Assembly: GCA_002794465.1 (NCBI GenBank)
Contig: MTSL01000165.1
Span: 1 to 32,000, forward strand
Reading direction: 5' to 3'
From: Paramicrosporidium saccamoebae KSL3
Lineage: Eukaryota > Fungi > Cryptomycota
DNA length: 32,000 nt
The stretch's first letter is position 1; each line of letters opens with the position of its first letter. Positions 1-31,453 of the stretch are shown here, piece after piece. The notes beneath the pieces are model-generated. The model had not been told where the DNA came from. It searched no databases and saw nothing but the letters and a program-made list of their open reading frames with translations. Position numbers and translations under genes: made by a program.

Positions 1-885
1 CTTCAGAGCCCTAGTAGAACCGACCATTTGAGGGGCAATATGATCAGTGTCTGCATAGAGCTTGGGAATAGACTCGATAATTTGGTCAAGAATTTTTTCT
101 GGTACGTACTTGTTTAGCCAATCACAATTCAGTGCAATTTCTCTCTTCGTGGCGGGATTAAGGAGGGAAAAGATGTTTATCGCATCATACTTGACGATGG
201 TTTCGTGCAATTCGCTACTGGAAACTGCAGAAAACCATGACTCGCTACCGATCGTAGTGTACAGTTTGTGGTTGTCTGCTTTGATACACATTTTCCAGAA
301 CTGCCCCCAATCAGATTGTTGTTGACTCCAAAATTCCTGGGCGACAATGTTTTTCCCGTAGAGCATGGCCCAATACCAGTGTTCCTGCTCCAGATCCTCC
401 CAAATATATGAATACCAAAGGCACCTCAGGACTTCGTAATATCCCATCTTTAGTGCTTCCTGCACTGCACCTTCTGGATTATTGAGGGCGGGGCACCAAG
501 TCATTAAGAACAAAGCTGAACGACAATACTCGGTCAATTTAGTATCATTGTTGGCGAGTACGCGGCGTCGTTCTAGTTCGAGTTGGAGTGCGGTAAGATC
601 CAAACTGCGACCGCTATCAATCAAAGTAGAAATCTCAGTAAGAGCATCAGCGCCTTCCAGTTCAGCATCATCAATTTCATTCTTATTCCCGGACGGCGCG
701 GCGAGGGTCAAACCATCGAAACTCGCAACCAACGTTCCAAGGCTTGAAGTTTTACCTATCTGCGACTGCGAACTGGTATGCTCCAAGTTGAATCCATCTT
801 TTTGAACGTCCTCCGGGTCGCCCTCAGAGCAATTGGCTTTTTGGGTCAAAAGTAGCAAGAACGGGATGACTGTTGACCACAACAT
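1..885 (-). CDS. Secreted ankyrin-like repeat family protein, paralog A (runs off the window start, so missing from the ORF track)
   Basis: Open frame from ATG at 885 to base 1 (295 codons, no stop): MLWSTVIPFLLLLTQKANCSEGDPEDVQKDGF...CPALNNPEGAVQEALKMGYYEVLRCL...HWYWAMLY...KADNHKLY...KYDAINIFSLL. Collinear with 1168..3282 (MLWPTAIPFLLLLTQKANCSEGDPKDIQKDGF...CPHL...CYEILKCL...HWFWSMIY...KSDNAKLY...KCDASNIFAIL). Confidence 0.85.
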   Translation of the reverse strand, partial: MLWSTVIPFLLLLTQKANCSEGDPEDVQKDGFNLEHTSSQSQIGKTSSLGTLVASFDGLTLAAPSGNKNEIDDAELEGADALTEISTLIDSGRSLDLTALQLELERRRVLANNDTKLTEYCRSALFLMTWCPALNNPEGAVQEALKMGYYEVLRCLWYSYIWEDLEQEHWYWAMLYGKNIVAQEFWSQQQSDWGQFWKMCIKADNHKLYTTIGSESWFSAVSSSELHETIVKYDAINIFSLLNPATKREIALNCDWLNKYVPEKILDQIIESIPKLYADTDHIAPQMVGSTRALK

Positions 886-1119
886 GAACTATTTTGTCGT
901 AGTGTCACGGGCGGTACCAAACGCCACGTAGCCGAGTGAGTAGAAAGTGAGAGGTAGGTTAGCTCCTAGTAGCTGCCGAGGGCTGGATCCTCCTTTATGG
1001 CTTTCTTGAAGGATTTTTAATTTGCCATATCAGATCATCCTCCAGCCCCGCTGCTTTCGACTCGCTCAATTCATCGCTGATGCATCATTGGATGGATTTC
1101 GCGCTCAATGACATGGCAT
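791..1119. repeat. Direct duplication (copy A) of the signal-peptide region plus upstream region of the ankyrin-like genes; copy B is at about 3188-3461
   Basis: 791-885 vs 3188-3282: 6 mismatches in 95 bp. Similarity continues upstream of both ATGs (GTGTCACGGGCGGTACC, CGCCACGTAGCCGAGTG, TAGCTGCCGAGGGCTG, GACTCGCTC, ATCATTGGAT, ATTTCGCGCTCAA). Copy A has an extra 53 bp (1005-1057). Confidence 0.9.
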
Positions 1120-1167
1120 TCAATCTGCCTGATAAAACTCGCATTGTTATAATTGTTATCCCGCCCT

Positions 1168-3282
1168 TTATTTGTGTAGAATTTTGCTCTTTTTATCGGC
1201 GATCCATCTTAGGGTTTCTTTGTCTTTTGAACATACCGTTGTCGGAAGAATTTTGTAGGTTCTCCACATCCATTCCAAAATGACATACTTTTCTGCTTCT
1301 GTGCATGCCGCTGCAGAATTAGAAATTTCTACATCACGCAGCAATTCTGGATTGATTTCATGTATCGCCATCAGATAGTCTATTCTACCATTCATTGCAG
1401 CCGTCTTTGCGAGTCCAATACCAATGGGATATCCTTTCCTGTGCAACCAGCGGAGAACTTGTACATGACCATACTCAGATGAGCTTGACACCATCATCGA
1501 AAGCATCTCTTTAGCATGCACCGAACTAATCCAATCGAGCACTTCCAGGTACATGTCTTCAGATAGCCGCTCAAGTGACCAATGCAGCATTTTCGAGTTT
1601 GACAGAACATTATTGGGAAGATTGTAAAAGATCCATTTCACAATCTCCAGTCTGCCTCCTCGGAGAGCAGCGACACTGTACTGATCTGCATAAGTCACAC
1701 TCTTAGTATATAAGATAGGGCGCAGCGTGGGAATTGCGTTGGGACAGATCTTATGGAACCATTGCAAAACAGGCAAGTGACCATTTCGACAAGCACGTAC
1801 CACGAATTCGTCTTTCGGTAAAGACTTGCTTGGCTGTTCATAAATCCATTGGAGAATATGAACTTGTCCAAGTACGGCGGCGACATTTGCCACACTTGTC
1901 AGTACGCGTCTATCCACGGGTGGGCCATATTTCTTGCTTAGTTTTTTCAGATCCCCATCGAATATTAGGAACAAATGCCGGACTCTGCGATTCCATTTGA
2001 TATCGTTTCGGAGTCGAAGCTGCGGAATAATCTTGTACAATCCAGGGCCTGCGTCGGGGTCACTTAACTCTTCGTTCCAATCAATCAGATGGCCGAACAT
2101 GGTAAGCATCCAAGTAACAATGTCTGGTTTCTCAAAATAGATGGCAGCAGATACCAGCCATGCGTATGGCTCCGTAGGGTCGTTTGCTATAAGCAGCCAT
2201 TTCAAGACATCCAAGTTGCCGTTCTTTATGGCAAGTCGTTCGAGACCACACCGTTGAGTAAAATTAAGATGCGCTGGGAATAGTGCTTTCAGCAATGCCA
2301 GGCAGTCATGTTTGACCAGCCAGCGTACATAAATGTTACGAATCTCCCGCTGACCTTTTTTTAGTTTCAGACTGAATTTCGGAACTTGAAAGTGGCCGGC
2401 ATGGAAGAGATATTGTAATACCTCAACCGAGCTAATCGTCTGAGGAGCAATGCGACTAGTGTCGGCGTCTAAATCCTGAATAGAAACAATGATCCAGTCA
2501 ATAATGTTTGCTGGCGCGTATTTGTTTATCAAATCGGCATTCATTGCAATCTCTCTTTGCATGTCGGGGCTGAGAATGGCGAATATATTACTCGCATCAC
2601 ATTTGATTATCACGCTGTGCAGCTCGTTCTTTGGAATGCTCTGCATAAATTGTAAATCGGTCATGTCTATGTAAAGTTTAGCATTATCCGACTTGATTAT
2701 CATGTCCCAATGTTTGAGCCAGTCAAATTCTTGCCGATCCCAAATAGATTGATCAAGAGCGGGGGTATTATAAATCATGCTCCAAAACCAATGCTGTTGT
2801 GTTGGACTTTTCCAGAGCAAGCAACGCGCAAGGCACTTTAAAATCTCGTAACATTCGGTCCTGAGTGCTGTAGGCACTGCAACTGTGAGGTTGGAGAGAT
2901 GAGGGCACCCTGTCATCAAGTTCACTGCATAACGATAGTGCTCGGCAATGGACTCTGGGTGATCTCCTGCGCGTCTACGACTCGTCTCAAGCCGAGAATT
3001 GAGTTTGCGAAGATCCTTGCTGTGATCCGTGGTAACTATTATATCTTGGTAGGAAGCAAAGTTACCATTCTCGACTTGCGTAGTAAGGGTGAGCTTAACA
3101 ACCGATTCGGTCAGAACGGGAAGACTGTCATCAGTTTCAACAGACGTGGTGCCCATCGGAGGCTGCAGTTTGGTATTTTCTATGCCAAATCCATCTTTTT
3201 GAATGTCTTTCGGGTCACCCTCAGAGCAATTGGCTTTTTGGGTCAAAAGTAGCAAGAACGGGATGGCTGTTGGCCACAACAT
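1168..3282 (-). CDS. Secreted ankyrin-like repeat family protein, paralog B (704 aa)
   Basis: Hydrophobic N-terminal signal-like segment. The C-terminal half has repeated A-x-x-x-G-x-L-x-x-L-x-W units (AIKNGNLDVLKWLL, AAVLGQVHILQWIY, ACRNGHLPVLQWFH, ALRGGRLEIVKWIF, SSEYGHVQVLRWLH). Intronless. Confidence 0.85.
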   Translation of the reverse strand: MLWPTAIPFLLLLTQKANCSEGDPKDIQKDGFGIENTKLQPPMGTTSVETDDSLPVLTESVVKLTLTTQVENGNFASYQDIIVTTDHSKDLRKLNSRLETSRRRAGDHPESIAEHYRYAVNLMTGCPHLSNLTVAVPTALRTECYEILKCLARCLLWKSPTQQHWFWSMIYNTPALDQSIWDRQEFDWLKHWDMIIKSDNAKLYIDMTDLQFMQSIPKNELHSVIIKCDASNIFAILSPDMQREIAMNADLINKYAPANIIDWIIVSIQDLDADTSRIAPQTISSVEVLQYLFHAGHFQVPKFSLKLKKGQREIRNIYVRWLVKHDCLALLKALFPAHLNFTQRCGLERLAIKNGNLDVLKWLLIANDPTEPYAWLVSAAIYFEKPDIVTWMLTMFGHLIDWNEELSDPDAGPGLYKIIPQLRLRNDIKWNRRVRHLFLIFDGDLKKLSKKYGPPVDRRVLTSVANVAAVLGQVHILQWIYEQPSKSLPKDEFVVRACRNGHLPVLQWFHKICPNAIPTLRPILYTKSVTYADQYSVAALRGGRLEIVKWIFYNLPNNVLSNSKMLHWSLERLSEDMYLEVLDWISSVHAKEMLSMMVSSSSEYGHVQVLRWLHRKGYPIGIGLAKTAAMNGRIDYLMAIHEINPELLRDVEISNSAAACTEAEKYVILEWMWRTYKILPTTVCSKDKETLRWIADKKSKILHK

Positions 3283-3929
3283 GGACTATTTCGTCGCAGT
3301 GTCACGGGCGGTACCAGACGCCACGTAGCCGAGTGGGTAGAGGGTAGGACTTAGACCGACTACTAGCTGCCGAGGGCTGATTCTCTTTTATGGCTTTTGA
3401 CTCGCTCTATTCATCGATGAAATATCATTGGATTAATTTCGCGCTCAACGAGATATGGCATCATCTAACCTGTCTGGGAGCAAACTAAAGTTTGCCCTTT
3501 GCCGAGACTACTACCGAGTACTACTGGTGAAAGACACTGAGTAAAGAGCACTGCCCTGAATAAATGAAAGAAGAGGCAATTTTAGGATATTCTTGAGCAG
3601 AGACAACATTGCAGGTCATGCTGTGATCCAAATATAGTGACTTGAGAGGAAAGTTCTGTGCTAGGCAATACCATTAAGACATGGCGGACCTATTAGCCGC
3701 ATCTGCTGTACAATTGGCCATGTTCAAGAGGGGGTCCTAATGAGGAGGATTTGGTTTTATAAATAAAGCAAGTATTTAATAGAACCAGCTTTTTAGCGCG
3801 TGGGATTACCGCATGTAGGATATAAAGACACTCCGGGATGAAGGCATTACGGATGTCTTGGTTGGCACTGAGCCAAACATGTTGTTTCCGTGAGTAACAC
3901 TGGGGATCAGCTTTGGCTTTTACTGCCAT

Positions 3930-4249: not shown

Positions 4250-5725
4250 ATGGCTTCGGAAGTGACGGAAAACTTGGCAACCATGAGTTTGGAGCGTTTC
4301 GGCACCATCCCCACTACCTTTGCCAGCATCCCGCATGGTGCAGAGATTAAGAGCATGTCTGAAATTGACCCGGTGGCAGACATTGGGAAGCGCGTGACAC
4401 TGCGGGCCAGACTGCATAATGTGCGTGGAACGGCAAAGAATGCATTCCTAGTGCTACGAGAACGCCATATGGCCATCCAAGCCGTCTTTTTTGTGGGCGA
4501 AAATGTCACAAAGGAAATGGTTAAATTTGCAGCAAACATTACCAAAGAATCGATTGTGGATGTGGGGGGTGAATTGGTGAGCAGCACAGTAAAGAGCGAG
4601 CTGATTTCTTTCAAGACCTGCGAACTGCGAGCTGACATGATTTGGATTGTTAGTGCGGCAGGAGAACGTCTTCCCTTCCAAATTGATGATGCAGCTCGTG
4701 CTGAGGAGGCATCTGCCCCGGAGGAGACTCCCCTGCCCCGTGTGAATCTTGACACTCGTCTGAACAATCGCTGCGTAGATCTGCGCACTCCAGCCAACCA
4801 GGCCATTTTCCGGATGCAGGCGGGTATTTTGGAGATTGCCCGCGAATTTATGCAACGGCATCGATTCCAGGAGCTCCATACGCCAAAGCTGATTAGCGCA
4901 GCGAGCGAAGGAGGTGCAAATGTGTTCAAAGTGAGTTACTTCAAGAGTGACGCCTTTTTGGCACAATCGCCGCAGTTCTACAAGCAAATGGCCATCTGTG
5001 CCGACTTTGAGCGTGTCTATGAGGTGGGACCCGTGTTCCGTGCGGAAAACTCGTTTACCCATCGGCATATGACTGAATTCACCGGACTCGATTTGGAAAT
5101 GACATTCAAGACGGACTATCACGAGGTGGTGGATATGCTTGCTGCCATGCTGAATTTCCTTTTTGAGCAGCTACCAATCCGATTTGCCAAGGAGATGGAG
5201 GTGATTCGAGCCCAATACCCATCCAGCGAGTTTACCTTTTTGGAAAAGCCGCTGGTGTTGAATTACCGCGATGGAGTGGCAATGCTGCGTGAGGCGGGAG
5301 TAGAGATGGAGGACTATGAAGACTTGAGCACGGAAAAGGAACGCCGCCTGGGACAGCTGGTGAAGGAAAAATATGGAACCGACTTTTACATTTTGGACAA
5401 GTATCCTTTGTCGGTGCGTCCATTCTACACGATGCCGGCGCAAGAAGAGGGCTACAGCAACTCGTATGACGTGTTCATGCGTGGCGAAGAGATTATGTCG
5501 GGAGCCCAACGTATCCACGATGTGACAATGCTGGAGGAACGGGCACGTCATCACGGAGTCGACATGAAGACGGTGGAGGGATACATTGATGCGTTCCGCC
5601 ACGGAGTACCGCCTCATGCGGGTGGAGGCATTGGTCTGGAACGTGTACTAATGTTGTTTATGGATTTGAAGAATATCCGCAAGACTTCCATGTTCCCTCG
5701 TGACCCCAACCGCATTACCCCCTAA
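4250..5725 (+). CDS. DPS1: Cytosolic aspartyl-tRNA synthetase (491 aa)
   Basis: OB-fold anticodon domain (RLHNVRGTAKNAFLVLRE). Class II motifs HTPKLISAASEGGANVF, LAQSPQFYKQ, FRAENSFTHRHMTEFTGLDLEM, SGAQRIHD and PPHAGGGIGLER; ends FPRDPNRITP. Intronless. Confidence 0.97.
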   Translation: MASEVTENLATMSLERFGTIPTTFASIPHGAEIKSMSEIDPVADIGKRVTLRARLHNVRGTAKNAFLVLRERHMAIQAVFFVGENVTKEMVKFAANITKESIVDVGGELVSSTVKSELISFKTCELRADMIWIVSAAGERLPFQIDDAARAEEASAPEETPLPRVNLDTRLNNRCVDLRTPANQAIFRMQAGILEIAREFMQRHRFQELHTPKLISAASEGGANVFKVSYFKSDAFLAQSPQFYKQMAICADFERVYEVGPVFRAENSFTHRHMTEFTGLDLEMTFKTDYHEVVDMLAAMLNFLFEQLPIRFAKEMEVIRAQYPSSEFTFLEKPLVLNYRDGVAMLREAGVEMEDYEDLSTEKERRLGQLVKEKYGTDFYILDKYPLSVRPFYTMPAQEEGYSNSYDVFMRGEEIMSGAQRIHDVTMLEERARHHGVDMKTVEGYIDAFRHGVPPHAGGGIGLERVLMLFMDLKNIRKTSMFPRDPNRITP

Positions 5726-8444: not shown

Positions 8445-10037
8445 TCAATCTTCCTCCGTGGCAGTGTCGTCTGCTTCAGAGGCTGCCTCACTCTCGGAGC
8501 CTTCTTCCTCATTAGAGTCTTCATCGCTATTAAAGTCTTCGTCATACTCTTCCCCTACACTAGATTCGTCACCGCCGTCATCGTAGTCCTCGTCGGGTGA
8601 ACTCTCGTCATCCCCATTCATGCGCATCCTCTTTACCGCCGCCTCGTCTTCCGAGTCGCTAAATTCCTTGGTCACCTTTTTGCGTCGGCCCTCGTCTTCA
8701 TCCTTGGATCGGAAGTCAATGTTCTTTTGTTTCAAAAAGTCCTCCAAGAATTGGTATTCCTCCTTGGCAATATTGCTAAAGGACACGTCCTGACCCGACT
8801 TGAGGTAAAATTTAAGATCAAAGCTGCGCGGGTTGCCAGAACCAGAGCCCATTCGCGCAAACTCGACATGTGAGATTTCTCCATTTGGGATGAGCGTGAC
8901 GGGCTTGGGCAGGAACAGGATGTTGCGCTCCAGAGGATACAGGAACCCTTCGTTGGCCTTGAACGCGCATTTGATCGAATTTCCATTGCCCTGACTACGG
9001 AATGAGCCCGGCACAATAATCTTTTGTCCTGCAAGCAAACGGAACAGAGTGCTGACCACTTCAAAGGTGGGGGCATCGTATTGCATCTGCAGCTTTCCCT
9101 CGTATTTGCTCTTTATGGTCTCTTCGTCAATGTTTTGAAGGGCCACTTCAATTTCCTCGTCCTTGTTGAACTGGAAAACGAGGAAGGGATAGCGTGTTTG
9201 TCCCTGTCGGATGGGGGGATCGAGTGCCAGCACAAACAAGACGTGCATCTCATCCGCCTTTGGGAGAAGGAACAACTTGACGATGCTGCTATACAGAATT
9301 TTGTGGTCATAACTCTTTCCATGGAGACGCAGATAAGATGGCGTCATGTCCATTTGGAAGCGTCCTCGAGGAACAATACAAGGGAGCTCGGGGAGCGAGA
9401 CAATCACTTCGCCAGTCACTTGGTTCATTTCCGAGAAGCCCTTGATCTTTTCGCACAGCGACTTTGCGGCGTCCAAACCTTCGTCGCCCTCTTCTGCAGA
9501 GTCGCTCTCGTTTCCGGGAACATATAGCCGCATCTCTACCAGCGTGTCCGTCTTTTTGTCCACATTCTCCGGCTGGGAGAATTCAATGGCAATTTCGTCC
9601 TTGATGGTGACGACTGCATTAGTGACTTCCTTTAAGGGCAGGTCAAATGCCATTCTGTCGCCAACCTTGAATTCCAGATGGTTGCCATCAATCTCTGCCT
9701 TTCCCCAATTCCAACCCTTTACCGAGAGCTCTTTGGTTTCAAACGGCACCTGGTAGTGTTCCTTGACAAAATCCTTCAGCTCCTCCAGTGCCTCTGCTGG
9801 GAGACCATCAAATTTGTGCACAGACCCGTCCTTCAAGTAGATGCGCAGCTCATAACCACGCATGGCACGAAACCAGGCGATGCTGCTAAAGTCTGCCGAG
9901 GCGAGGGTGGTGACTTGAGCAGTGCTACTCTCCTTCCAGCCCAGTCCACCTTGCGCCAATTTCAGCTTTCCAGCACTCTTGGCGGTGAGCGACTGGAGGT
10001 AGACTTGGTCATAAGACAGTGTTCCCGCGTCGAGCAT
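8445..10037 (-). CDS. POB3: FACT complex subunit POB3/SSRP1 (about 530 aa)
   Basis: Likely start is the ATG at 10037. Motifs ELSVKGWNWG, LVEMRLYVP, PRGRFQMD, LRLHGKSYDHKI, PPIRQGQTRYPFLV and CAFKANEGFLYPLE; acidic C-terminus; no HMG box (fungal type). Confidence 0.96.
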   Translation of the reverse strand: MLDAGTLSYDQVYLQSLTAKSAGKLKLAQGGLGWKESSTAQVTTLASADFSSIAWFRAMRGYELRIYLKDGSVHKFDGLPAEALEELKDFVKEHYQVPFETKELSVKGWNWGKAEIDGNHLEFKVGDRMAFDLPLKEVTNAVVTIKDEIAIEFSQPENVDKKTDTLVEMRLYVPGNESDSAEEGDEGLDAAKSLCEKIKGFSEMNQVTGEVIVSLPELPCIVPRGRFQMDMTPSYLRLHGKSYDHKILYSSIVKLFLLPKADEMHVLFVLALDPPIRQGQTRYPFLVFQFNKDEEIEVALQNIDEETIKSKYEGKLQMQYDAPTFEVVSTLFRLLAGQKIIVPGSFRSQGNGNSIKCAFKANEGFLYPLERNILFLPKPVTLIPNGEISHVEFARMGSGSGNPRSFDLKFYLKSGQDVSFSNIAKEEYQFLEDFLKQKNIDFRSKDEDEGRRKKVTKEFSDSEDEAAVKRMRMNGDDESSPDEDYDDGGDESSVGEEYDEDFNSDEDSNEEEGSESEAASEADDTATEED

Positions 10038-23981: not shown

Positions 23982-26123
23982 ATGAAGCTTGCCGGTGCCT
24001 TTTTCGTATTTGCCTGCTACTTGGGATCAATCCAGGCGGGAGGCCCGTCCTGCCAAACTTTGATCAGTATCATTGAAAATGCTGATGGGAATGTACGGGT
24101 ACTTGATAGGATTAAAGCTGCCAGCGGATTGATGACTCCAAAGTGCGTTGGGGAGCTGACTGACACAGGTTCCCATGATACTCTGAATGAATTTCTCGCA
24201 ATGAGAACAAGATTGTGGACCGCTGGTACAAAACTGAACGAGATCCCAGAGGGGCGAGTTCCTCATCGTGTCAAACCGCTTTGGTATGCTGTAAAGAGCA
24301 GCCTTTCCCCATTTGCTCGTGTCAAGAGTGCAGATCAACTACGTTATCTTTTCAACCAGGCAAACAAGATTAAATTGCTGTTGGATCAGTTTGGCGAACA
24401 TGAAGAAAAGGTGGATTTTTTTGCAGTAGAACTACTAGGAAACGTTGACAAGTGTATTGATTTTGAAGTCCTCTATCCGCAAGACACTATTCCTATTATA
24501 TTGGATATGGCTGAGGGCCCCAGGGCGAATGTGGAATCGGTCATTGAGACTGCGCGGAAAGGCGTACTTGTAGAATTTACTTCCATTCCCAAAGCCAAGC
24601 AAGGCCATACACTTGCGGGCAGTCTTGGAGGGGTTGGCGCGTTACTTCAGGGGGCCGATAGACATAAAATGCAACAAGTCAGGGAGAGAGATCAGCTGGA
24701 CATGGACAATAGGTCAGTACCAGTTGGCTTGAAAAAGTCGGATGACACTATTGAAGTCCCTGACCCTGCCAACCCTGGAAAGAATGTGTGGATCCCATGC
24801 AGCTCAGTTGTTGCCCTAGACATTAAAAGTGAAGCCGTCAAGGTCAAGACTATGAAGTCTGTGTGCTTCAATGAACTATCAAATAAGACTCTTGATGCTC
24901 TCACACCTGATGATGTTGCTGGAGTACCAGATAAGCACTTTGGTGCAATGAACTACCGCACGATTCGTAGGCTGTTCGTAAAGGGAAAGCTTGCCAACAT
25001 TAGCAAAGCCAGATTTGCGGAAATTGGAAAGAATGATCCCTTGGTTTGTACCGCATTTACAGAAGATTATGCTTCCAGAATCAACGACTTTAAGGATGTG
25101 TCTCTTTCGGCTGATTGTCTTCTTGCAGCTCCTGGATGGGCTTATTTGGTCCGAAAGATGGGAAGGTTAACTCCTACAGAGTTTTTTGAAAAAATTGACC
25201 CCAAGGCAATTGTTGATAACCTCGAGATTGTTGCTGCCGAGAACCAAATTACTTCAACGCAGTGGAAAAAGGTTGGCGAAGACATGTGCGCATATTTAAA
25301 ACCAGGAATGATTGAAGCCTACCCCAATCTGCAGGGAAGCCTCCCCGATAGCTGCTTTGATCTAAACCCTGGATTAATTATTGCAGGAAGCACCTCAGTG
25401 GCAAGGAGACATAAAGAGGCATACCTGACTCGACTCGTTAAGAGCAAGAATCCCGTTGGGGTCACTGCTGAAGTCTTTAATGAAGTTGTCAAGATGAAAG
25501 AGAAGGAGCTGGGTGAACTCACTGACGAGTGGTGCCAACTCATTGAGCAAAGTGCTAGCAAGCTTGACAAAAAGCTGTCAGTCCTCTTCAAATGTTCTGG
25601 ATTCGCGTTCAAAAACATTACTGATGTACAACTAGAGCATCTCGCTCGACAGCCGAGCTTCTGCGAAATGATGAGGCCTGATATTGTCACGGCCATTGGA
25701 TCGGACAGATTCTTTGAAAAGGTGAACAACAAATGTGTTCCCCAACTCGACGCCTCGGTGATGGGTTTAATGACTGAATCTCTAGATATTGAAGAGTTTC
25801 CATGGAAGTCGGTTTCTGAACAGCAACTGGTCTCTCTTAGCGGCGCAGTTATCGTAAAGGCGCTGTCCAAGTTGCCACCTAGCGCCGTGAAGAATCTCTC
25901 TGAAAGCCAAGAGCTGGCCATTGAAATGGATTCCGACGCCAAGAAGATTTATGACGAGCTCAAAGCCAAACAGAAGCCCGCGGATGCAAAGCCCGAGTCG
26001 GCTTCAGCAGACGCAAAGTCAGAGGCAGCTCCAGAAGGTGCAAAGCCTGCCACTGCTCCGGCTGATGCACCAACGGTTACTCCGGTGGCCACACCAGCGG
26101 TTACTCCGGCGGCCACGAGCTAA
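23982..26123 (+). CDS. Orphan secreted Cys-repeat helical protein with an Ala/Pro/Thr-rich tail (about 713 aa)
   Basis: Likely start is the ATG at 23982 (MKLAGAFFVFACYLGSIQA, signal-like). Four C-x(19-23)-C units; tail ending PTVTPVAT-PAVTPAAT-S encoded by a 24-nt duplication (26070-26117); no TM or GPI tail. Confidence 0.8.
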   Translation: MKLAGAFFVFACYLGSIQAGGPSCQTLISIIENADGNVRVLDRIKAASGLMTPKCVGELTDTGSHDTLNEFLAMRTRLWTAGTKLNEIPEGRVPHRVKPLWYAVKSSLSPFARVKSADQLRYLFNQANKIKLLLDQFGEHEEKVDFFAVELLGNVDKCIDFEVLYPQDTIPIILDMAEGPRANVESVIETARKGVLVEFTSIPKAKQGHTLAGSLGGVGALLQGADRHKMQQVRERDQLDMDNRSVPVGLKKSDDTIEVPDPANPGKNVWIPCSSVVALDIKSEAVKVKTMKSVCFNELSNKTLDALTPDDVAGVPDKHFGAMNYRTIRRLFVKGKLANISKARFAEIGKNDPLVCTAFTEDYASRINDFKDVSLSADCLLAAPGWAYLVRKMGRLTPTEFFEKIDPKAIVDNLEIVAAENQITSTQWKKVGEDMCAYLKPGMIEAYPNLQGSLPDSCFDLNPGLIIAGSTSVARRHKEAYLTRLVKSKNPVGVTAEVFNEVVKMKEKELGELTDEWCQLIEQSASKLDKKLSVLFKCSGFAFKNITDVQLEHLARQPSFCEMMRPDIVTAIGSDRFFEKVNNKCVPQLDASVMGLMTESLDIEEFPWKSVSEQQLVSLSGAVIVKALSKLPPSAVKNLSESQELAIEMDSDAKKIYDELKAKQKPADAKPESASADAKSEAAPEGAKPATAPADAPTVTPVATPAVTPAATS

Positions 26124-27770: not shown

Positions 27771-29033
27771 CTATTGGATTGACCATTGCAGAGAAACCTT
27801 GACAAACGGATCTTGATCACCATTGGCCATATTAAGGGCAGTCCATAGCTCGGCTTCTTCGGCAGATTCCATCGTTGATGACGCCGCACTCTGTAGTGCA
27901 GCCGCAATATCAATGGGGGAAATTCCAGGTAGATGCAGCTGCTCTAGGTTTTGCAGCAGCGCAAGGCGAAGCTTCTTTTCGCCCTTGGTAGAGTCTTTCC
28001 CTGCGCCGGGCTTTAGGGTGAGAGAGAGGAAATAGGGCGGAAGTCCATATTGCAATACACTCTCCACAAACAGACGCAGTACCTTCAAGTGCATCCAGGC
28101 GGAGAATAATTCACCAAAATTTGTCTTTAGCAGACGAACAAGGCTGGCCCATTGAGCCTTCATGTCACTTTGCATAGCCTGATCAGCCTCCTGGATCTCC
28201 TGTTGACGGTTCTCGTCGTAGTCGTACTCGCGAACCGTAAAGCGCTCTGCACTTGCAGCTTTAATAAACTCGTCCTTGACCTTGTTAAAGACGGTTACAT
28301 TGTACAGGGCATATCCATCCTCCTCTGCCAGGAGACGAGACGAGCGGGGGACAACCATTTCAGAAAGATGCTCATATATGGCCTCCCACCGTTTCTTTTC
28401 TGGAGCGGTAACTACCACCAACAGAGTCTGCATGAATTCAGAGGGCTCAATAAAGTCTTTCGCCGTGACTAAGGAGCCGAGGTCCTTGGTGAGAAAGGTT
28501 CCCGTATTTTTGCGCTCTGCTGCGGCAACAGAGGACTTTGCTTGGCTATATGCATTAAGGCGCGCCTTTAGCAAGCTTTCAATCTGCTGCGTCTCTTGCA
28601 CAATAGTGTCGGCTATTTCGGTAACAGTCTTGTCAGTCCGGTACTTCATCACGTTCCACTGGAAGGACTTTACATAGGCCTCGGGTGTGGCCACTTCATT
28701 GACTACCAGGCTGCTACGGAGCTGCTCGGAATCCCCATTCAATAGCCCGCGAAAGTTGGAAACCAGTCTGTTGACAGTTGTCTCGAGTACTGGATCCATT
28801 TTGGAAAGGTCCTCACCGGCTGCTACTAGCGAATCCAAGGTCCCCACCTTGAACTCTGGAAAGGCAAACTGGTGAACCTCGGCAACGTCGCTGCTCACCG
28901 AGAGTTTGTCTTTGAGGAACGAATAAAGAATGTTGCGATCCTCATCAACCAGCGAGTTGTTGTGAGTGACCACTTCTCTGTGCTTTAAAGGAAGTGCCAA
29001 TAACCAAAACATTGACGAAGAGCTACCACTCAT
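27771..29033 (-). CDS. VMA5: V-type H+-ATPase subunit C (about 420 aa)
   Basis: Likely start is ATG 29033 or 29012 (MFWLLALP). Motifs FPEFKVGTLDSL, FQWNVMKY, VVPRSS, LYNVTVF and WMHLKVLRLFVESVLQYGLP. Confidence 0.95.
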   Translation of the reverse strand: MSGSSSSMFWLLALPLKHREVVTHNNSLVDEDRNILYSFLKDKLSVSSDVAEVHQFAFPEFKVGTLDSLVAAGEDLSKMDPVLETTVNRLVSNFRGLLNGDSEQLRSSLVVNEVATPEAYVKSFQWNVMKYRTDKTVTEIADTIVQETQQIESLLKARLNAYSQAKSSVAAAERKNTGTFLTKDLGSLVTAKDFIEPSEFMQTLLVVVTAPEKKRWEAIYEHLSEMVVPRSSRLLAEEDGYALYNVTVFNKVKDEFIKAASAERFTVREYDYDENRQQEIQEADQAMQSDMKAQWASLVRLLKTNFGELFSAWMHLKVLRLFVESVLQYGLPPYFLSLTLKPGAGKDSTKGEKKLRLALLQNLEQLHLPGISPIDIAAALQSAASSTMESAEEAELWTALNMANGDQDPFVKVSLQWSIQ

Positions 29034-29266
29034 CCTTGCTACCTTTGTCGCCGGGGGTGGGTAGGTAGGAGGCCGGCCATGCGGAAATGTAGGCATGGTA
29101 TGCCGACACGCTACAATCCCCAGTGACAGAATCTTTTGAGAATGCGAGGGGCTCTATAAAGTAACTGCGACCGTGTCGGTAGTGGCTGATATTATTGGCT
29201 TGCACTATATTCCATTGCGGCTTTGACTGCCAAACACTCTGATTATCCGACAACAACGATCCAACT

Positions 29267-31345
29267 TTATTTGTCTAATGATTCCGCCTGGTAAAGTTTT
29301 TTCGCCACCCACTCTTCGACTCTATTGTACTCGCGCATGGTTGGCAGCATATGACACGTCTTCCACAGCCAATCCAAAACGTTGTGCTTCCACACTGTCT
29401 GACCCCTGATCGCTGCTAAATTAACAACCTTCATAGTGCACACCAGCGATGGATCAATGGTGTAGATTGCCTTTAGAATTTCCACCTTACTGTAAGTTAC
29501 GGCCAACTCTACAATATTTGGAGTTATGACCAATCCTTGCTCATGCAGCCACTGGAATACTTTTACGTGGCCCCAATAAATAGCATCCCGCAATAATTCC
29601 GAGTCAACCTTGATCGTGCTCATTGATGCGATCCATTTGAGAACGCATAACTGTGCTTCCTCGGGTACATGGTTTGAATTTGAATAGATGTCTCTCAAGT
29701 TTGGTAGCGCGTCCTTGAAAAGGTTTGCCAATATCCATTCCATGAGGTCCTGATTGTTGTGCATGGCGGCGTACAGGAGGCACTTTGACGTGTTAATGCC
29801 AGGGAGTTTGTCTGTAGGTACTATTCGGGTGCTGTCAGTGTTGAAAATCCAGTTCAAAACGAGAAAATGGCCCTTTTCACAGGCCTTTTCCACAGAATAA
29901 TTGTTGGGAAGAATTACAAATCTGCCCCAAATCCATTCAAGAATGTCAATATATCCACCCACTGCTGCACAATTTGCCACCTCCTGCTTCCATTTATCAG
30001 AAATCTCTGGATCTGCAAGTGCATTCTGCACTTTTTGTAGATTGCCTTTTGACACTACTAATAAAACGGCTACTTCGGGTTGTAGAGTGATACCGAGCTC
30101 GTCTCGAAGAGATTTGATAATTTCATGAGAGCTGGTATTCTTGTAGCAAAGAGAAATCACGGAATCCCAGTTAATCTGATATCCAAACTCGGTGAACAGC
30201 CATTTGACAGTCTCCCAATGTCTAGATTGGATGGCGCTGCTCACGGATAACAATGATGGGCCTCTTGTCTTTTTTCCAGTCCGAGTCGTCGTTTGTTCCT
30301 GCTTCTGCATGTGCAACCACTTTAGCACTTCAAGACTGCCTTTTTTGACGGCATAGCTATAAAGGATGCTATAGCTGTACTTGAAATTAGGATTCTCTTG
30401 GAACATTTCTTGTAATAATGATAAACACTTGTGCTCAACAAGCCAGAGTGCACAGTCCGTATGGATTGACAAGGAGTTGTCTTTTGATTGAAGACAGAAC
30501 TTTGGGATTAGGCTGTAGTCGATATGGAAGAGATCTTGGAGGATTTTGGAAGACATGACAGTATGAGGGGGGATTACCTGGTTAATTACACGCCTTGACG
30601 CATGGTTAATCACCAAATTAATATCATTTTCAGTTCCCCAAGCCACGGCAGGGTGGAATTGAGAAAGAATATTAGCCGCGTCAAACATGATGATGCAGTC
30701 GCGCAAATCGTCTTGGGAAATGTCCTCAAAATACGGCTCACGACTGATTTCATCAAAGAGTTTAGCATTGTCGACCTTGACGATCATTCTCCAGAACTCA
30801 CTCCATTCAAACTCTTGTTGAGCCCATAAGGTAGTATTAAAGACTGGAGTTTCATAGATCTTGGCCCAGAACCAGTGTTTTTGCTCCTGGTCCTTCCAAG
30901 TGAAACAACACGCAAGACAGTGCAGGACTCCATAACAGTCAGCTTCAAATGCTTGCTGCACTGTCTCTTCGACATTGTCTAGCGCGGGGCAGGCGGCCAT
31001 TATGGCTCTCGCGTCCCGATAAAATGTTTCGATGCGCTCAAAATCGTCGCCTGCCTTTTCACGACGCTTAGCAAGACTTGATTCAAGGGATTGAACACTC
31101 GGGTTAGTGTTTGCAAAATCAACCATTTTACCCAACGGAGTGAGGGTCAAGTCATTGACGCCTGAAACAACAAGCTCGATAGAATTGGGATCACCATTTT
31201 GCTTGGTGGTATCCGGTAGCTGAAACTCTGTACTGTTCGTCCAACCCTTGCTAAGGCCGCCCGAGCCCGTTCCTCGGCTCAGGAGTGACAACAGCGAAAT
31301 TGTTGTGGGCCACAAGATGCGTTGAACTATGCCAGAGAGTCTCAT
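29267..31345 (-). CDS. Secreted ankyrin-like repeat family protein, paralog C (about 690 aa; ORF open to 31384)
   Basis: Collinear with paralogs A and B (CPAL, CYGVLHCL, HWFWAKIY, KVDNAKLF, FDAANI). C-terminal repeats AVKKGSLEVLKWLH, AAVGGYIDILEWIW, ACEKGHFLVLNWIF and AIYWGHVKVFQWLH. Confidence 0.85.
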   Translation of the reverse strand: MRLSGIVQRILWPTTISLLSLLSRGTGSGGLSKGWTNSTEFQLPDTTKQNGDPNSIELVVSGVNDLTLTPLGKMVDFANTNPSVQSLESSLAKRREKAGDDFERIETFYRDARAIMAACPALDNVEETVQQAFEADCYGVLHCLACCFTWKDQEQKHWFWAKIYETPVFNTTLWAQQEFEWSEFWRMIVKVDNAKLFDEISREPYFEDISQDDLRDCIIMFDAANILSQFHPAVAWGTENDINLVINHASRRVINQVIPPHTVMSSKILQDLFHIDYSLIPKFCLQSKDNSLSIHTDCALWLVEHKCLSLLQEMFQENPNFKYSYSILYSYAVKKGSLEVLKWLHMQKQEQTTTRTGKKTRGPSLLSVSSAIQSRHWETVKWLFTEFGYQINWDSVISLCYKNTSSHEIIKSLRDELGITLQPEVAVLLVVSKGNLQKVQNALADPEISDKWKQEVANCAAVGGYIDILEWIWGRFVILPNNYSVEKACEKGHFLVLNWIFNTDSTRIVPTDKLPGINTSKCLLYAAMHNNQDLMEWILANLFKDALPNLRDIYSNSNHVPEEAQLCVLKWIASMSTIKVDSELLRDAIYWGHVKVFQWLHEQGLVITPNIVELAVTYSKVEILKAIYTIDPSLVCTMKVVNLAAIRGQTVWKHNVLDWLWKTCHMLPTMREYNRVEEWVAKKLYQAESLDK

Positions 31346-31453
31346 TATCCGACCGCGCCACTTCCTTTCCAACCACCCATCCACTCGGCGGATTACATCT
31401 GATGGACCTATACACTGCTATTGGACGGGTTGATCAGGGCATCTTTGTATATG

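Follow-up and report, generated by a model that had tools for sequence, protein, structure and literature searches.

A family of signal-peptide-like ankyrin proteins in Paramicrosporidium saccamoebae and a promoter-plus-leader block shared by one tandem gene pair

Two tandem genes, designated A and B, are located at the start of contig MTSL01000165.1 of Paramicrosporidium saccamoebae (assembly GCA_002794465.1). Promoter and first codons of both genes are nearly identical, whereas the remaining coding sequence is strongly diverged. This raises the question how two old paralogs came to share such a short block, and what kind of protein is encoded behind it. P. saccamoebae is a rozellomycotan and an intranuclear parasite of amoebae (PMC5701793). 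The window analysed here is a stretch of 32,000 nucleotides; its first base is the first base of the contig, which is 35,270 bp long. Paramicrosporidium is the closest sequenced relative of the Microsporidia that has retained a canonical fungal-like cell biology. To our knowledge, almost nothing is known about the manipulation of the amoeba nucleus by this genus. We consider it probable that A and B belong to a lineage-specific family of secreted-type, host-binding ankyrin proteins, and that their common block goes back to one exchange in this one pair.

The block shared by genes A and B

Over codons 1-32, 89 of 96 nucleotides are identical in A and B; the chance of at least 89 matches is 7e-15 at p=0.57. 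Three of the differences are synonymous and four non-synonymous. With the A cassette (-200 to +100) as query against the window, blastn detected 87.4% identity over 214 nt (A 3188-3397 = B 791-1004, E 9e-72) and a second block with 82.5% identity over 63 nt (A 3399-3461 = B 1059-1119). The 54 nt at 1005-1058 are present in the B copy and missing from the A copy; no feature was recognised there. A maximum chi-square scan placed the segment of high identity at -165 to +94 relative to the ATG of A. Inside this segment 226 of 259 positions (87%) are identical, outside of it 431 of 818 (53%). The chi-square of 98.8 was reached by none of 200 permutations, and the longest identical run is 48 nt. Beyond codon 33 or so, DNA identity drops to 47-57% and protein identity to about 40%. 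Thus, the near-identity of the first codons, the roughly 200 bp of alignable upstream sequence and the abrupt divergence behind the leader, all reported in a preliminary description of this DNA, were found again. The gene-conversion test proposed there, carried out here as the maximum chi-square scan, supports an exchanged tract.

The synonymous sites are decisive for the interpretation. In the A/B leader the proportion of differing synonymous sites (pS) is 0.15 (3 of about 20 sites), compared with saturated values of 0.77-0.80 in the remaining gene; the probability of three or fewer differences in 20 sites is about 8e-9. The non-coding DNA upstream, over about 165-180 bp, is 83-87% identical and hence level with the synonymous sites of the leader. 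Because both kinds of sites are equally alike, the block indicates recent shared ancestry rather than constraint on the protein level. Judged from the sequence, a single exchange of about 260-330 bp between old, saturated tandem duplicates would account best for the near-identity. This could have been a gene conversion or the replacement of the 5' end of one gene by that of the other. It would have taken place long after the tandem duplication, with roughly 0.15 substitutions per site since then.

In the other loci examined no match to the A/B block longer than 27 nt was detected, this one in the family member H. The leaders of further pairs are less similar: those of C/D are 45% identical, those of E/F 73%, and C/E as well as C/F reach 68-69%. 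Upstream of these leaders, the DNA could not be aligned except for a CCAAT box and an AGTGGCRC element. The near-identity of promoter and leader is an event in the A/B pair only and not a design feature of the family. Accordingly, the homogenised expression and secretion cassette assumed in the preliminary description applies to A and B, synonymous sites included, and does not extend to the other pairs.

Some observations weigh against a single exchange. The leader pS is also lowered in E/F (0.24 vs 0.61), C/E and C/F, without upstream conservation, with each of these values resting on only 20-25 synonymous sites. Constraint on the leader codons at the nucleotide level, or older or recurrent exchange, may therefore have acted beyond one event. 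Moreover, a conversion with flanks of only about 55% identity is mechanistically awkward, and a non-homologous replacement of the 5' end is equally possible. These leader values also fit the proposal that purifying selection on promoter and signal peptide kept the block alike without any recent exchange of DNA, and the CCAAT box and AGTGGCRC element found upstream throughout the family point to some constraint on the promoter. Nevertheless, we regard selection as an improbable cause, since the identity extends uniformly, without patches, across about 260 bp, since four of the seven differences in the leader alter the amino acid while synonymous sites are equally kept, and since the upstream DNA of other pairs under the same demands could not be aligned. 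Recurrent exchange is carried further in the idea that the family constitutes the main effector repertoire by which Paramicrosporidium-like parasites act on the host nucleus, with a helical N-domain not seen before joined to the ankyrin solenoid, and that promoter plus signal peptide form an exchangeable cassette. This is unlikely; if true, the lowered leader pS of several pairs would reflect recurrent ectopic conversion, by which expression and export stay uniform as the binding surfaces become more diverse. An artefact of the assembly, that is a chimeric or collapsed contig end, is suggested by the position of B at the very end of the contig and of further family genes at or near several contig ends. 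It is barely credible, because the copies differ by seven substitutions in the leader, by more in the upstream region and by the 54-nt indel, and because both continue into different open reading frames (ORFs). With the single exchange as the preferred explanation, A and B offer a small and clear case of old paralogs that exchanged promoter and leader.

Protein architecture and predicted secretion

For the proteins behind the leader, only ankyrin models of Pfam were matched, and these in the C-terminal half; the first 300 or so residues gave no Pfam match. Ank_4 scored 33.4 bits in A and 42.4 bits in C (cut-off 22.7), Ank_2 scored 32.6 bits in C (cut-off 27.3), and Ank_3 was above its cut-off in A and C. 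An AlphaFold2 model of A was built on a family alignment of 26 sequences; the family alignments include two faulty database gene models, the mis-spliced P0008 and the chimeric P0003. The model reached a mean predicted local distance difference test score (pLDDT) of 78.7 and a predicted template modelling score of 0.69. It consists of a short helix (residues 6-17), disorder (15-87, pLDDT below 50), an all-helical part (90-300, pLDDT 85-96), a beta-hairpin (305-314) and about 12 helix pairs (316-704, pLDDT mostly 75-95). In the comparison with the PDB by Foldseek, the top matches were espin-AR, ankyrin-1/B and DARPins with a probability of 1.0 and E 1e-4 to 1e-2; FEM1 and AnkX of Legionella (rank 47) were matched as well. 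The global template modelling scores were low (0.15-0.26), as expected for solenoids of different curvature. The family profile matched only ankyrin chains of the PDB, down to 7e-11. By profile and predicted model, the family consists of ankyrin-type proteins. This agrees with the ankyrin-like family of the preliminary description, whose motifs CP.L, HW[FY]W, DN.KL[YF] and DA.NI proved to be conserved columns of the family alignment.

The part in front of the repeats is less easily assigned. For the N-domain of A (residues 89-300) neither a Pfam match nor a profile match in the PDB nor a fold match was obtained. Modelled alone it was poor (pLDDT 64) and again gave no fold match. In the full-length model the N-domain is composed of helix pairs, and positions around 35-68 of its hidden Markov model (HMM) cross-match the repeat regions weakly, so that the N-domain may represent a far-diverged continuation of the ankyrin solenoid. 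Domain and repeats are predicted to form one continuous solenoid, which is a protein-binding scaffold. No catalytic domain was found in the family proteins.

A signal-peptide-like N-terminus, as stated in the preliminary description, is conserved in every member whose 5' end is present, and also in a distant subfamily. The leader has a hydrophobic core of 9-12 residues and small residues at -3/-1. Sites of the cleavage type are A-N-C/S after residue 19 in A and B, and G-x-G-S or S-A-V-A types in the others. The common leader opens with M-R-L and, behind a few variable residues, shows I-L-W-P and a core rich in Leu; in A, B, G and H the first residue is located at or near the L-W-P position. 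A second hydrophobic span of transmembrane length was not found, with no 19-residue window above a Kyte-Doolittle (KD) value of 1.41 elsewhere. Likewise, neither a retention-type motif in the C-termini inspected nor a translocation motif in the family proteins was identified. From the leader we infer an entry of the family proteins into the secretory pathway. Against this count the lack of a charged n-region in A and B and the weak hydrophobic core of C (KD 1.86). In addition, 15 of 34 neighbouring genes show a hydrophobicity score of at least 1.8, so that this score, used descriptively only, fails to separate the family.

Taken together, the predicted layout would comprise a cleavable signal peptide for the endoplasmic reticulum, a disordered acidic linker of 25-75 residues, a family-specific helical domain (about 210 residues) and, behind it, some 12 repeats of the ankyrin type. 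Linker length and sequence vary among the paralogs. Secretion would bring the proteins to the parasite surface or into the nucleoplasm of the host, and their partners there would be host proteins. Classical secretion alone could be sufficient to meet host nuclear proteins, because the parasite grows inside the host nucleus (PMC5701793). Host exposure of the family proteins we can only infer. According to sequence and model, and with a family that is multiplied, clustered and deeply diversified in an obligate intranuclear parasite, the proteins would most likely function as exported protein-binding scaffolds.

The main rival to exported scaffolds is that the proteins serve on the surface of the parasite or within its spore structures. 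More generally, the leader could target endomembranes, surface or spore structures of the parasite, or be nonfunctional, and the proteins would not be host-directed effectors at all. We hold this to be possible, if rather unlikely. The leader is short and in A and B uncharged, and many unrelated neighbours score alike by the crude hydrophobicity measure. Its conservation together with a variable linker across at least 11 paralogs and environmental relatives, however, weighs against this reading and supports a function of the leader, and neither a second hydrophobic span nor, in the C-termini inspected, a retention-type motif was found. Furthermore, ankyrin solenoids are established as binding modules and not as wall components. 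A different doubt concerns the origin of the genes, as the preliminary description had considered a horizontal acquisition. Amoebozoan host, oomycetes and giant viruses come into question as donors of the family or of its ankyrin part. The best named ankyrin-only matches are indeed from Cavenderia fasciculata (E 2.5e-47), Heterostelium album and Pythium oligandrum, and the host is an amoebozoan; however, names were available for only 20 matches, and repeat proteins reach high scores because many of their stretches match. The N-domain occurred in none of about 125 ankyrin-only matches, and with an alignment of five N-domain sequences as query it was not detected in the viral contigs of IMG/VR. 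The G+C content of the family genes, overall and at third codon positions, falls within the range of neighbouring ORFs; at third codon positions it is 0.47-0.52, similar to the 0.46-0.50 of other non-housekeeping ORFs on the contig, compared with 0.56-0.61 for its housekeeping genes, among which the family genes are embedded. Deeply diverged paralogs point to a long residence in the genome. The composition typical of the contig, the housekeeping context and the absence of the N-domain from IMG/VR and the named matches examined thus speak against the earlier proposal, and a horizontal origin is very unlikely. As to the type of repeat, formerly compared with those of giant viruses and oomycetes, the likeness to oomycetes held for Pythium and the Amoebozoa have to be added: the named non-family matches among the 20 with listed sources are two dictyostelids and two P. 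oligandrum proteins, and giant viruses were not among the closest of these. Such matches do not show a transfer.

Family members and genomic setting

At least 11 close members are encoded in the P. saccamoebae genome, several of them in tandem pairs. These are more than the three noted in the preliminary description, whose third member, gene C, was recovered (Table 1). Members D-K were found by tblastn and by reading the ORFs of the contigs behind the P. saccamoebae matches. They are open frames beginning with Met and a hydrophobic leader where the 5' end is present; a typical member has no introns and comprises about 650-730 codons. The product of gene C is 31% identical to A, and its true ATG lies 13 codons inside a longer ORF started by GTG. 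For H, an alignment was obtained with no more than the N-terminal half of the paralogs, and this gene may be truncated or decayed. The remainder of gene B was not found on any P. saccamoebae contig examined; I was considered as this missing part and rejected at 39% identity. The distant subfamily (P0142-type) has at least two copies in P. saccamoebae. Paralogs are 29-44% identical, with A and B as an old outgroup pair, and synonymous sites outside the leaders are saturated in every pair (pS 0.6-0.8). Hence, the divergence of the mature proteins, compared with fast-evolving cargo in the preliminary description, may simply be old rather than fast.

Table 1. Positions of family genes, their parts and selected neighbours (window numbering, unless another contig or locus is given)
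Feature	Position	Strand	Remarks
Gene A	1168..3282	-	Intact intron-less ORF, 704 codons plus stop; in-frame stop just upstream of ATG
Gene B	1..885	-	5' part only, 295 codons; ATG at 885, no stop, cut by contig end
Gene C	29267..31345	-	Intact ORF, 692 codons plus stop from first ATG
Gene D	contig 32180-34381, outside window	-	Tandem upstream partner of C, 733 codons
B copy of promoter-plus-leader block	791..1119	-	Fills most of the 282-bp A-B intergenic spacer (886-1167)
A copy of promoter-plus-leader block	3188..3461	-	Maximum chi-square bounds 3189-3447
B leader, signal-peptide-like, codons 1-19	829..885	-	Core of about 10 hydrophobic residues; A-N-C / S agrees with the -3,-1 rule
A leader, signal-peptide-like, codons 1-19	3226..3282	-	
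A residues 20-88, disordered polar/acidic linker	3019..3225	-	pLDDT below 50
A residues 89-300, family-specific all-helical N-domain	2383..3018	-	pLDDT 85-96 in full-length model; runs on into solenoid
A residues 301-704, beta-hairpin, then about 12 helix-turn-helix ankyrin-type repeats	1171..2382	-	
AGTGGCGC element	31355..31362	-	About 10 nt upstream of C ATG
Aspartyl-tRNA synthetase	4250-5725	+	
V-ATPase subunit C	27771-29096	-	
E and F	near end of contig 73		Tandem pair
G	contig 113		
H	contig MTSL01000076.1 (L010 5643-6770)		Open frame of only 376 codons
I	contig 14		Cut by start of contig
J	contig 14		
K	contig 166		

An exhaustive profile search gave 22 proteins below 1e-30 and 5,597 below 1e-3, the latter mostly generic ankyrin proteins. 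Word-index protein searches with full-length A and with the N-domain alone returned only the chimeric gene model of the window itself. The N-domain HMM matched 21 of 157 proteins; those traced belong to P. saccamoebae or to environmental assemblies, and none of the matches among the 157 was a named protein of another organism. Relatives outside P. saccamoebae were obtained only from JGI metagenomes and Logan read-archive assemblies. They are fragments with 38-54% identity to the best P. saccamoebae member, and leader and variable disordered linker are kept in environmental relatives down to about 20% identity. A Logan contig of SRR16214429 carries a full-length member (L006 138-2147) and, in tandem behind it, a distant-subfamily gene (2354-2845) that has a leader of its own. 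This tandem indicates that both subfamilies and the tandem arrangement predate P. saccamoebae. The P. saccamoebae genome paper and its supplements contain no mention of the family and no locus tags for it (PMC5701793). Nothing relevant was found in the literature examined on Paramicrosporidium ankyrins or secretome, or on microsporidian ankyrin families.

Upstream of the family genes, the CCAAT box is located about 75 nt before the ATG. The AGTGGCRC element precedes the ATG by 10-20 nt in C, D, E, F and G (elsewhere than in C at L002 ~870-880, L003 ~510-520 and ~2780-2790, and L004 ~9985-9995), and A and B carry the diverged form CCGTGACAC. AGTGGCRY was not enriched in the whole window, with six matches vs 3.7 expected. 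It is possible that element and box constitute a promoter or initiator architecture specific for the family.

In the deposited gene models, adjacent family genes have been merged or conserved coding parts removed by splicing, whereas the genes read as single uninterrupted ORFs. P0001 (window 1-3282) represents A without about 112 residues, joined to B. P0005 (L002 890-4968) joins part of D to the N-terminus of C, and PSACC_00972 (L003 500-3623) joins E to the N-terminus of F. PSACC_01592 (L004 10001-11736) corresponds to G with a gap. Family genes were observed five times at contig ends or within about 1 kb of them (window 1; L002 1-890; L003 1-500; L011 1-3; L012 near the end), and in two cases the contig end truncates the gene. 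At the contig ends beside family genes, no repeats of telomere type and no tandem repeats were found. Either the assembly breaks within the family, or the location is subtelomeric.

Between the family genes, contig MTSL01000165.1 carries ordinary eukaryotic housekeeping genes. Besides the two listed in Table 1, the neighbours are a cNMP-binding protein, a tetraspanin, SSRP1/POB3, SF3b10, a Ras-type GTPase, FGGY kinase/Slu7, a glucosamine-6-phosphate isomerase-type gene and an RNA recognition motif (RRM) protein. Flanked by the latter two genes, a 713-aa protein with a signal-peptide-like N-terminus and without a Pfam match is encoded at 23982-26123 (+). On contig MTSL01000189.1 (L005 1886-21366), six to seven hypothetical genes follow one another for which Pfam gave no match. 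Most of them have signal-peptide-like N-termini, and one is the ankyrin-only PSACC_03043. This run may be a second cluster of secreted proteins.

Comparison with known systems

The closest named sequences for the repeat region are ankyrin proteins of dictyostelids and oomycetes, namely DFA_07758 of Cavenderia fasciculata, a protein of Heterostelium album and Poli38472_007102 of Pythium oligandrum. They share the repeat with a G-x-L-x-V/I-L-x-W-L helix. In contrast to the family they are without the N-domain and often much longer (1093-2569 aa), and the layout of leader and linker was not evident in the proteins examined.

Ankyrin effectors are known from Legionella (AnkX and relatives), Coxiella, Wolbachia and Rickettsia. 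By analogy, P. saccamoebae would resemble Legionella with AnkX as an amoeba-infecting intracellular parasite whose ankyrin solenoids bind host proteins, with export being predicted here. The bacterial effectors differ in the use of type IV secretion, C-terminal signals and often enzymatic fusions, whereas the route of the family would be a putative signal peptide. No sequence relationship exists beyond the repeat.

Expanded families with signal peptides are also known from Microsporidia, such as the large gene families of Nematocida, InterB of Encephalitozoon and the leucine-rich repeat (LRR) families of Trachipleistophora, Vavraia and Spraguea. In this sister lineage, too, compact genomes carry families with multiple copies, clustering and conserved N-terminal leaders; they diverge rapidly and are proposed to be exposed to the host, which the family described here may share. 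These families possess LRR or unknown repeats instead of ankyrin repeats, and no sequence relationship was detected in the searches. A conserved secretion leader in front of a divergent mature protein is furthermore characteristic of the RxLR proteins of oomycetes and the candidate secreted effector proteins of powdery mildews. There the leader is conserved throughout the family, in contrast to the near-identity including the promoter in one tandem pair described here.

Secreted repeat-protein families of intracellular parasites are well known, and the present one is an undescribed family of this known kind. It extends existing knowledge rather than overturning it. Among the roughly 3,750 genes of this genome, at least 11 encode ankyrin proteins with a signal-peptide-like leader, and these are concrete candidates for the manipulation of the host nucleus.

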